Positions 18,680 through 22,386 of a stretch of DNA of 48,830 nt are shown one piece after another (the stretch's first letter is position 1; the number at the start of each line of letters is the position of its first letter). The notes beneath the pieces were generated by a model. It was not told the DNA's origin and made no database searches. It worked only from the letters and a program-made list of their open reading frames with translations. Both the position numbers and the translations under genes were made by a program. The DNA comes from Calcarisporiella thermophila CBS 279.70 (Eukaryota; Fungi; Calcarisporiellomycota): the NCBI RefSeq assembly GCF_041956535.1, contig NW_027192210.1, positions 581,196 to 630,025 of the forward strand, read 5' to 3'.

Positions 18680-20015
18680 ATGTACCGACTTGGGGTCCCA
18701 TTGGCGCCTGCTCGGAACTTCACCTCGTCGTATTCCTTCCGGTCCCTCAACCTTCTTCTCGCAAAGTCCCGCGTCTTCTATTCAACCTCAAAGGGCAATG
18801 ACACTACTCCGCTTGAATCCGATCCTTCCAAACTCCCTGCAACCGTAGGCTTCCACCGCCACCACCTCTTCGTCCTCTCGGGGCAGAACCCGGAGGCATG
18901 GCCAGGTCGCCTGGAGCTTGTCGATAGTTACCTTATGGAGCTGGGATCTGTGATGAAATCATTAAGTGTCAAAGTTAATCGCGCATTTGTCATGCCATCT
19001 ACAAACGAGGCTGGCCAGGCCGAGCCGGAGGATGAGGAAGCCAGAGATCTCCTACTCTTTCCAAACATGCTTCGGCTCCCACAGATTTCTTCCCGCCATT
19101 TTCCGGCACTCGCTGACTACATCCGCAATCCCACGGCGCCCACAACACTGCTCAAGAAGGCGGAGAAAATCTCGGGAACTCATGTGTTCGTGTGTGTGCA
19201 TGGGACACGAGACTGCCGTTGTGGGGTTTACGGGACAATGCTAGCGGAAAATTTGATCGAGATTGCCCGGCAGAAAGGCCGGCCGGATGTGAAAGTATGG
19301 GGTGTATCGCATATCGGGGGCCACAAGTAATGTTGGATGGTAGAAAGAAGTCTCGACTATCTGGGGATTAACCAAGACCATGCATATAATGATAATGATA
19401 GGTATGCTGGGAATGCGATTGTGTATCCCCAAGGCGACTGGTATGGCCTTATTCATACACGAGAGGATGCCACTGCCTTGCTCGAGCATCTGGATTGCAA
19501 TACGGTGATGTGGGAGCGGTGGAGGGGCCGGCTAGGACTCACATCTGAAGAACAGGAGCAGATTGCGAAAGATCGCCACCACCAGCTTCATTCAAGTGCA
19601 CAGGCAACAAAAGAGGAGGAGGTCCGAGTGATATTTGAGTTTCCAAATGGCGAAGAGAGAATCGTGAGTGGACGCTTGGGAGAGCGTGTGCTGGATGTTG
19701 CGCAGCGGAACGATATTCCACTGGAAGGTGTGTGTGGAGGCAACCAGGAATGCGCTACCTGCCATGTTATTGTGAAACCAGAGCAGATGCAGCTTTTGCC
19801 CCCCGTCTCTGGTAGGGATATCTGCACCCATTAATTTTCGTGTTTGCACACTTGGATACTGAAGCCTTTTTTTAATTTCGATTGACATGATGATAGAGAA
19901 CGAGGAGGATATGCTGGAATATGCACCTTTCCGTGAAGACACTTCACGGCTCGGATGCCAAATTAAACTGCACTCGGGGTTGGATAACCTACACCTGCGA
20001 ATTCCGGTGGTTTGA
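18680..20015 (+). CDS. Probable mitochondrial fusion protein: Apd1/Aim32-type thioredoxin-like [2Fe-2S] ferredoxin (sucrase/ferredoxin-like) plus C-terminal adrenodoxin/putidaredoxin-type ferredoxin; 3 exons
   Basis: Exons 18680-19326, 19402-19811 and 19897-20015. Arg/Ser-rich presequence without acidic residues. First domain: CVHGTRDCRC (CX8C), SHIGGHKYAGN (HX3H), DWYG, WRGRLGL. Second domain: CGGNQECATCH (CX5CX2C), EEDML, SRLGCQI. Confidence 0.88.
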
Positions 20016-20544: not shown

Positions 20545-22012
20545 CTACTTTGGAATCCTCTTCATAGCGTGGGTCAGCCAAAGGGCGGTCGTTAACAGGG
20601 TCAGACTTCCCGCCTGGTGGGCGGCGGCCAGGTCGGTAGGAACCATCAACAAGAGCGTCCCTATTCCAAGGGAAACTTGGAGTAAAGCCACGCCCATGAG
20701 GGAATTGACCGCGAGCCTGGCACCTGGGGGCAGAGGCAAGCGCCGGGAATACAGCCAGAGTGAGCTGATGACCGAGAAGGTGGAGATGGCCAGGACGCGG
20801 TGGTCGAACTGGGCCGTGGTCGGATTTTCAAAGATGTTCCGCAGCATTCCTAGGGCGTCTTCGCGAGCAAAATCCTTAGTCCAGAGGTCGTCGGGGATCA
20901 GTCTACCCCCCATATAGGGGAACTCGTTGTAGATCAGACCCGCGTCTAGCCCAGCTACAAAGGCTCCGGAAATAGCCGTCGCAAACACCAAGAAGGCAGT
21001 TCCGATGGCGGATCGCCGGAATACGGCCAGGCGTGGATTCTGCAATGCGGTGGTCACGCCGGCGGGGAAGGTTCCTTGTGCGATCTTCCAGTCCCGCAAC
21101 ACCTTCAGGCCGGTCATTATGGAGCCCGCATAGATGACGAATGCGGTGCCTAAGTGGGCGGCAAGCCGGTAGGGACTTACACGTGGCACCGCTCCGGGCG
21201 TGGTCATGAGTTCCTCCTTTAGTCCAGACTTGACCATGTACCATCCAAGGACTCCTTGGAAGCCGATGAGTGCGCCAAGCCCCCATGCCCGCCGAGTGAT
21301 GGCGGGAGTCATGTAGCCCTTATAGGTGAAATAGACGGCGGGCAACAAGAAGGAGATTCCGATGAAGCGACCCCACATTCGATGGGCCCATTCCATATAG
21401 AAAATGGATTTGAATTCGGGCAATGTCATTTGATGATTAAGGCTACAAAGAATCCAATGCTGAATTAGTGCGCAGATCCAGACAAATCCGAGAAACATGC
21501 CGAAGCAAAGAGATGCATGAAGCTATCGGATTTAGTAATCCGAGTTGAACTCACATTTTATACTCAGGGAATTGCTTGTACTTTTCGAATTCAACCTCCC
21601 ACTCCTCCTCCGAACGTGGGGGCTTCATTCCCTTGATGAGATTCCACTCCGTGATGGACAGTCCACTCTCCGTTAGGCGCGTGAGCCCGCCCAAGACGAC
21701 GATCCCAAAAGTAGATCCTGCATTAAAGAGGAGCCAGTAGCCTACGATCGGCCGAGAGGATGAAATAGGGGATGCGGTGGTGTAGCTGCGAGGGGTAAAA
21801 AATGGGTTCTGGCGAGAGAAAGGGCCGGTTTGTGAGGGGGAAATGCGAGGCAACCGGAGAGGAAGTGACGACGGCCGTATTGAAGACGTGCACAATGAAA
21901 CAAAGGGGTTGAGGGAATGTGAACGTGCACGCCATGCGGCCGTTTTTGGCGAGAAGAGGGGGGTATGAGGTCTAAAAGTGGAGCGGAGGTGCGTACATGC
22001 AGTGCGTATCAT
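20545..22012 (-). CDS. COX15: Heme A synthase, 2 exons
   Basis: Mitochondrial presequence from ATG 22012. Motifs VVLGGLTRLTESGLSITEW, FEKYKQFPEY, EWAHRMWGR, RLAAHL, SGAFVAGLDAGLIYNEFP, QFDHR and AAHQAG. Confidence 0.96.
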
Positions 22013-22386
22013 CTCGAGGTTATAGCGCCGTTGCTCGCGTACCGTAGACAGACAAAATTTAACAAGTGTTTTCACTTGTGACTGCGGATTAGGCTCTGAG
22101 GAGGAAGAGAGAGAGTGCAATTTGGCCTCTATATGTGATCCGCGTATTTCTCACAATGGCTCACATTCCGAGGACGAATATCCTCCGGAGGCTACAGAGC
22201 AGCGTCCGTATATAAGATGGAAATCTTCAAACACAGCCTTTGATTTCGCCAGGTTTGATTATGAAATAGTGCCATTTGCTCTTCTTTATGAAACTACAGC
22301 CATTATTATTATGTATTTTTTTTATTATGCCCTATCGAGCAGAGAAAAAAAAATATTCACACAGGGGAAAAAAAAATAAGGCAAAT

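Follow-up and report, generated by a model that had tools for sequence, protein, structure and literature searches.

A predicted two-cluster protein of Calcarisporiella thermophila and other non-ascomycete fungi, in which a thioredoxin-like ferredoxin is fused to an adrenodoxin-type ferredoxin

Background

Which electron donor serves the thioredoxin-like ferredoxins (TLFs) of the Apd1/Aim32 class is the question raised by a gene of the fungus Calcarisporiella thermophila CBS 279.70, the predicted product of which joins such a ferredoxin, in one polypeptide, to a second ferredoxin of the adrenodoxin type. The gene is situated on the forward strand of a stretch of 48,830 nt (contig NW_027192210.1, positions 581,196 to 630,025), called here the window, and all positions given without a contig name are those of the window. 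Apd1 and Aim32 of yeast, like the related plant proteins, are [2Fe-2S] proteins with bis-His cluster coordination that have been well defined by spectroscopy, and their electron donor and biochemical function are open (PMC8482512, PMC11126956). The listed partners of Aim32 include Erv1, Osm1 and TIM components, with no ferredoxin among them (PMC8482512).

The original prediction, made from the nucleotide sequence alone, described the gene as an in-frame fusion of a TLF domain with two cysteine and two histidine ligands and a ferredoxin domain with four cysteines, and proposed an electron relay between the two clusters inside mitochondria. In this work we have analyzed the gene and its relatives by computational means. 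The fusion is confirmed as a genuine three-exon gene, its architecture is widespread in non-ascomycete fungi, and the fused ferredoxin is, by sequence, of the mitochondrial Etp1/FDX2/Yah1 type. On balance, and with ample room for doubt, we regard it as probable that electrons would pass from NADPH through a ferredoxin reductase to the ferredoxin domain and from there to the TLF cluster.

Methods

The three exons were used as separate queries, and the full-length analyses were done with the identical public protein, P0001. An AlphaFold2 model was built on an alignment of 62 family members (mean predicted local distance difference test score, pLDDT, 84.6; predicted template modelling score, pTM, 0.67), and the conservation counts given below refer to the same alignment. 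Two quick trees were calculated, one for the TLF domain (217 columns, rooted on bacterial-type homologues) and one for the ferredoxin domain (103 columns, no outgroup); neither contained S. cerevisiae or animal sequences. Branch support is given as the Shimodaira-Hasegawa-like approximate likelihood ratio test (SH-aLRT).

Results

The fusion gene

The gene model is a predicted one, and it is confirmed as a genuine in-frame fusion (Table 1). When exon 2 was compared with 1.84 billion representative proteins, P0001 (VTP21DRAFT_5044 of Calcarisporiella thermophila, 391 amino acids, source name "uncharacterized protein") was retrieved with identity over all 136 residues, and an exon-by-exon comparison showed that each of the three exon translations equals the corresponding piece of this protein. 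The location of the gene, the junction inside exon 2, the WRGRLGL motif (residues 256-262) and the eight cluster ligands, all of them features of the original prediction, are borne out by this comparison. Only two codons, those of K216 and E353, are split by introns. The junction between the domains (residues 263-287) is wholly contained in exon 2 in one open reading frame (ORF 19337..19834), and in two relatives one ORF without interruption, located on a genomic contig, encodes the entire fused protein, so that the existence of the fusion does not depend on splice prediction.

Table 1 Features of the fusion gene in the window
Feature	Position	Strand	Details
Fusion gene, coding region	18680..20015	+	391 aa, three exons; public model VTP21DRAFT_5044
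Exon 1	18680..19326	+	residues 1-215 and the first two nucleotides of codon K216; translation identical to residues 1-215 of P0001
N-terminal residues 1-47	18680..18820	+	presumed mitochondrial presequence
Suc_Fer-like / TLF region	18839..19540	+	residues 54-262, range spans intron 1; predicted cluster-binding fold in residues 164-268
CX8C	19193..19222	+	predicted ligands C172 and C181, with clade-specific C179 between them
HX3H	19310..19324	+	predicted ligands H211 and H215
Intron 1	19327..19401	+	75 nt, GT..AG (GTAATG...ATAG); interrupts the TLF domain just past the HX3H ligands
Exon 2	19402..19811	+	residues 216-353: end of TLF domain, linker, first two thirds of ferredoxin domain
Linker	19541..19615	+	residues 263-287, after invariant W256-R257-G258
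Adrenodoxin-type [2Fe-2S] ferredoxin domain	19616..20012	+	residues 288-391, range spans intron 2
CGGNQECATC loop	19733..19762	+	predicted ligands C327, C333 and C336
Intron 2	19812..19896	+	85 nt, GT..AG (GTAGGG...ATAG); within the ferredoxin domain
Exon 3	19897..20015	+	residues 353-391 and TGA stop; encodes acidic patch and fourth cysteine of the ferredoxin
Acidic patch	19899..19919	+	residues 354-360, NEEDMLE
Fourth ferredoxin ligand, C373	19956..19958	+	motif SRLGCQI

The TLF domain

The N-terminal part of P0001 matches the Suc_Fer-like family (PF06999) with 117.8 bits against a cut-off of 34.9 (E 8e-34, residues 54-258). Exon 1 alone gives a Pfam match with E 4.7e-23 over profile positions 3-144, and the beginning of exon 2 corresponds to the remaining part of the profile, positions 145-191. 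A sequence search of the PDB with the TLF part gave no meaningful match. Residues 164-268 of the model superpose, with middling Z scores, on the TLFs of Aquifex (1f37; Z 8.9, root-mean-square deviation, rmsd, 2.8, 100 aligned residues) and Azotobacter (5abr; Z 8.8, rmsd 2.1, 95 aligned residues), and the cluster-binding lobe of Apd1 has likewise been compared with thioredoxin-like [2Fe-2S] ferredoxins (PMC11126956).

The TLF part of the fusion protein shares with yeast Apd1 and Aim32 the Pfam family, the CX8C...HX3H ligand pattern and a two-lobed architecture, the second lobe being the one for the cluster, and a 2Cys-2His [2Fe-2S] site is predicted in it as a member of the Apd1/Aim32 class. 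It differs from the yeast proteins in that a ferredoxin domain is added at the C-terminus, the C-terminal tripeptide ending in tryptophan is missing, and a near-invariant extra cysteine, C179, is placed beside ligand C181. This residue (19214-19216), part of the motif RDCRCG, is present in 56 of the 62 family members, whereas K, R, E or A occupies this position in Apd1, Aim32 and the homologues from plants and bacteria.

The ferredoxin domain

Fer2 (PF00111) is matched by residues 296-377 of P0001 with 37.7 bits against a cut-off of 21 (E 2e-9), and by exon 2 alone with E 1.2e-7; the four ligands are spaced CX5CX2CX36C. The two Pfam matches, the ligands and the intronless relatives together uphold the reading of the gene as an in-frame fusion of a bis-His TLF with an adrenodoxin-type ferredoxin.

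The best sequence relatives among solved structures are the ferredoxin of S. pombe Etp1 (Etp1fd, E 1.5e-28), human FDX2 (6.5e-25) and yeast Yah1 (3.5e-23), followed by adrenodoxin (about 1e-18) and then by alpha-proteobacterial ferredoxins. The C-terminal domain of the model superposes on Etp1fd (2wlb) with a template modelling (TM) score of 0.94, rmsd 1.0 and 50% identity, as well as on human FDX2 and adrenodoxin, and reaches Z scores of up to 20.7 with alpha-proteobacterial ferredoxins (3hui). The sequence comparison thus assigns the domain to the mitochondrial Etp1/FDX2/Yah1 type, with which it has in common 40-50% identity, the fold, the ligand spacing and an acidic patch. Within this patch E355 never varies, D or E is found in most or all members at positions 353, 356, 357 and 360, and the pattern EED-M-L-E, which aligns with DEENDMLD of Yah1 and FDX2, is kept. 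The acidic patch of adrenodoxin-type ferredoxins is their reductase-docking site.

The fused domain is nevertheless, on sequence criteria, not a canonical Yah1/FDX2 orthologue. Its loop reads CGGxxECATCH, with glutamate before the second cysteine and ATCH after it in all 62 members, as opposed to the canonical ACSTCH; the glutamate, E332 (19748-19750), takes the place of the alanine of canonical ferredoxins. The C-terminal RNxxVDG tail, which is present in the Yah1 of C. thermophila and in plant mitochondrial ferredoxins, is absent from the fusion ferredoxins, and the fused domains, joined as they are to a TLF, form a clade apart from both canonical mitochondrial and alpha-proteobacterial ferredoxins. 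The true Yah1 gene of this fungus is found elsewhere in the genome.

It was on account of the loop that the domain had at first been taken as closer to bacterial putidaredoxin than to Yah1. Putidaredoxin has the same fold and a CGG...CATCH-like loop similar to that of the fusion protein, but its similarity over the whole domain (about 4e-9) is far below that of the mitochondrial type (1.5e-28 to 3.5e-23), so a putidaredoxin-like origin is rejected, with which the ferredoxin tree and the Yah1 loop concur: the loop of yeast Yah1, quoted in the original prediction as CEGSxACSTCH, in fact reads CGGSCACSTCH.

Distribution and conservation of the family

With exon 2 as the query 50 representatives were retrieved at E <= 1e-10, many of which align across the whole junction and are 350-620 amino acids long. 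Both ligand sets, eight residues in all, are present in at least 67 of the retrieved proteins. No variation is seen in seven of the eight ligand columns, those of C172, C181, H211 and H215 among them (62/62 each), and the eighth, C373, is kept in 60 of the 62 members. Clusters with 91, 101 and 52 members are present in the ESM Atlas under the automatic name "2Fe-2S ferredoxin-type domain-containing protein".

The family members belong to Chytridiomycota (Powellomyces, Fimicolochytrium, Geranomyces, Polychytrium, Chytriomyces, Rhizoclosmatium, Cladochytrium), Gonapodya, Mortierellomycota, Kickxellomycotina (Dispira, Tieghemiomyces), Calcarisporiella and Basidiomycota (Mixia, Melampsora, Rhodotorula, Sporobolomyces, Leucosporidium, Kwoniella, Tremella, Rhizoctonia, Cantharellus, Hydnum), and there was no fusion member from Ascomycota among the retrieved family proteins. 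The combination of Suc_Fer-like with Fer2 is therefore widespread in non-ascomycete fungi and has hundreds of database members. The architecture had been thought to be uncharacterised, which stands insofar as a literature search found no paper describing a TLF-ferredoxin fusion, but it is not rare: the fusion is already in public databases, uncharacterised and under automatic names.

Phylogeny

The fusion proteins form one clade in the TLF tree (SH-aLRT 96), sister to stand-alone proteins of green algae (90), whereas the ascomycete proteins named Aim32 and the Apd1-like fungal proteins ending in tryptophan fall in a different clade (98). An assignment of the TLF domain as an orthologue of Aim32 or Apd1 is ruled out by this quick tree, calculated without S. 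cerevisiae sequences, and by sequence the domain represents a third fungal TLF lineage beside these two. The Rosetta-stone argument that had pointed from the fusion to yeast Aim32 consequently holds at the level of the family and fails at the level of orthology.

In the ferredoxin tree a branch with 96% support sets the fusion members apart from the canonical mitochondrial and alpha-proteobacterial ferredoxins, which are unresolved from each other; the fused domain may derive either from a duplication of the fungal Yah1 or from a separate alpha-proteobacterial source. Basidiomycota, Mortierellomycota, Kickxellomycotina and two chytrid groups appear as subgroups in both trees. Because the two domains give one fusion clade each with the same subgroups, the trees fit a single ancient fusion early in fungal evolution, followed by vertical descent and losses.

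Paralogues and probable cellular location

There are four Suc_Fer-like genes in C. thermophila, the fusion included. The three others are Apd1-like (G000 C9:674032-674816, C12:406237-407183 and C4:560363-561590; L001-L003), their products end in tryptophan, and in every one of them an intron follows SHIGG, no more than two codons away from the position of intron 1 of the fusion gene. Two of the three end in LSW, which fits the targeting tripeptide of the CIA system (assembly of iron-sulphur proteins in the cytosol), [LIM]-[DES]-[WF] (PMC10245660). A canonical stand-alone Yah1 gene is present as well (G000 C5 at about 401596-401766; L011 1402-1877, minus strand), with a CEGSLACSTCH loop, an RNMRVDG tail and a domain interrupted by an intron, so the fused ferredoxin would be an additional, dedicated copy.

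The first 35 residues of the fusion protein contain five K/R and no D/E, and residues 1-47 are disordered in the AlphaFold2 model. Such a basic, acid-free N-terminus is found in only this one of the four Suc_Fer-like proteins, and in most fusion orthologues over the same 35 residues. In Spizellomycetales the orthologues (P0003, P0151-P0157) are triple fusions, in which Suc_Fer-like and Fer2 are followed by a FAM210A/B-like domain at the C-terminus (PF06916; for P0003, E 1.9e-11). The FAM210A/B domain occurs in mitochondrial membrane proteins, and its presence would suggest membrane anchoring in this order. The presequence-like N-terminus across the family and the FAM210A/B-like domain make it probable that the protein is mitochondrial, as had been proposed.

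Arrangement of the two domains

In the model the domains are connected by a helix (residues 264-282, pLDDT about 72-93) which follows the invariant W256-R257-G258. A docking prediction of residues 48-265 against residues 283-391 returned a score of 0.00, which gives no answer either way on binding. The length of the linker is very variable within the family, with H-to-C spacings of about 96-220 residues, and the ESM Atlas models of relatives superpose on the TLF part alone. Taken together, these two observations suggest a loose tether with transient docking of the domains in place of a fixed arrangement.

Discussion

Proposed electron path

The reading that we favour, as probable on balance, is that of a single nuclear-encoded and probably mitochondrial polypeptide with two [2Fe-2S] sites. 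NADPH would reduce a mitochondrial ferredoxin reductase, a homologue of Arh1, which would in turn dock at the conserved acidic patch of the ferredoxin domain and reduce it; from the 4-Cys cluster, of low potential, the electron would then pass intramolecularly to the His-ligated cluster, and this, at a higher and proton-coupled potential, would deliver it to an acceptor or substrate. Input from NADPH through an Arh1-type reductase appears the likeliest, because the acidic patch (residues 353-360) aligns with the reductase-docking patch of adrenodoxin. The direction of flow, from the ferredoxin to the TLF cluster, we infer from potentials, since known bis-His clusters are at higher, pH-dependent potentials than clusters of the adrenodoxin type.

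Three of the results weigh against this path: the great variability of the linker, the failure of the ESM Atlas models of relatives to support a fixed two-domain arrangement, and the lack of orthology between the TLF domain and the characterised yeast proteins.

A more far-reaching proposal, which we put forward tentatively as a possibility, is that an adrenodoxin-type ferredoxin with its reductase is the physiological donor of the whole class of Apd1, Aim32 and plant AIM32-like proteins, and that the fusion is an ancient, self-contained module of fungal mitochondria for proton-coupled electron transfer with two clusters. If so, ascomycetes, which do not have the fusion, would perform the same reaction with separate Yah1 and Aim32.

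Alternative explanations

The protein might be a polyprotein precursor, fused for the sake of co-expression or co-import only, from which the ferredoxin is cut after import so that the two parts act separately. Etp1 of S. pombe, a fusion of COX15 with a ferredoxin, is processed by cleavage after import, and the best solved relative of our domain, Etp1fd, derives from this very fusion precursor; the variable length of the linker would also agree with this reading. The beginning of the linker is, however, conserved, with the invariant W256-R257-G258 followed by the helix predicted for residues 264-282, the fusion has been retained across several fungal phyla with congruent trees for the two domains, and a cleavage site was not identified. 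We consider this explanation unlikely, though still a serious alternative.

Alternatively, the ferredoxin domain could service the TLF cluster itself in reductive assembly or repair, or the pair could be a sensor of redox state or iron. Mitochondrial ferredoxins are electron donors in the synthesis of Fe-S clusters, [2Fe-2S] clusters with His ligands, such as those of the IscR and mitoNEET classes, are in many cases labile or serve as sensors, and the clade-specific C179 and E332 are placed beside the two clusters. The RNxxVDG tail matters for the role of FDX2 in cluster biogenesis, though, and it is this tail, present in Yah1 and plant mitochondrial ferredoxins, that the fusion ferredoxin lacks; nor did a Pfam search of the fusion protein reveal any DNA-binding or signalling domain. 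Either variant seems to us improbable.

Electrons could also take the reverse route, with the TLF cluster as donor to the ferredoxin domain and, beyond it, to clients of ferredoxin. The potentials of known clusters, higher for the bis-His than for the adrenodoxin type, speak against it, as does the conserved acidic patch, which suits reduction by ferredoxin reductase, and we rate the reverse path as even less probable. That two neighbouring genes were wrongly merged into one model is effectively refuted by the junction in one open frame inside exon 2, the intronless fused ORFs of two relatives, the exon match to P0001 and the occurrence of the architecture in more than 60 orthologues.

Significance

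A conserved natural fusion offers a concrete and testable candidate donor for the Apd1/Aim32 class, namely a ferredoxin with ferredoxin reductase, and provides one polypeptide in which transfer from a 4-Cys to a 2Cys-2His cluster can be measured. The family is present in the genetically tractable Rhodotorula, Mortierella and Kwoniella and in rusts, and the lack of studies on it may be due to its absence from the ascomycete model yeasts. Its value is limited by the fact that the TLF domain is paralogous to Aim32 and Apd1 and that the architecture was already visible in public databases, which makes the lead weaker than had been hoped from the original prediction.

The COX15 neighbour and related natural fusions

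The gene for heme A synthase, COX15 (20545-22120, minus strand; PF02628 on two exons, E 2.3e-75 and 5.4e-22), is located tail-to-tail with the fusion gene at 530 bp from its stop codon. COX15 needs a ferredoxin and is fused to one in S. pombe. Etp1 is similar to the protein described here in that it is a fungal mitochondrial protein with a Yah1-type ferredoxin at the C-terminus of another protein, and its fusion partner is the convergent neighbour of the C. thermophila gene; the difference is in the partner itself, COX15 in Etp1 and the TLF domain in C. thermophila. A dedicated heme A module was rejected as a conserved feature, COX15 being adjacent to the fusion gene in none of the four other genomes (Polychytrium, Mortierella alpina, Powellomyces, Rhodotorula).

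Some further fusions were encountered. In Dothideomycetes sp. NU459 the Suc_Fer-like domain is fused to FAD_binding_6 and NAD_binding_1 (P0304/P0305), a module of the ferredoxin-NADP+ reductase (FNR)/cytochrome-b5-reductase type; this would be a second, independent link of a TLF to an NAD(P)H-driven electron chain, and it could also be a merged gene model. In Creolimax fragrantissima a mitochondrial-type ferredoxin is fused to zf-CDGSH (P0225), a mitoNEET-type domain with a His-ligated [2Fe-2S] cluster, which makes it a further natural case of a 4-Cys ferredoxin combined with a His-ligated cluster.

In the plant AIM32-like proteins P0208, P0213, P0219 and P0222 the TLF domain is followed by a conserved motif, CCQGxNGxxCCR, and by a hydrophobic tail at the C-terminus, which may represent an additional metal site and an anchor to the membrane. 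On a metagenome contig (L098 6001-7790) a bacterial homologue of 215 amino acids shows the CX8C...HX3H pattern; its gene and the acyl-CoA dehydrogenase gene downstream of it share 4 nt, and the pair looks like an operon. In a single case, on a Logan contig (L097 1975-4518), an intronless gene of the fusion family (P0202) adjoins a gene for a UbiE/COQ5-type methyltransferase.

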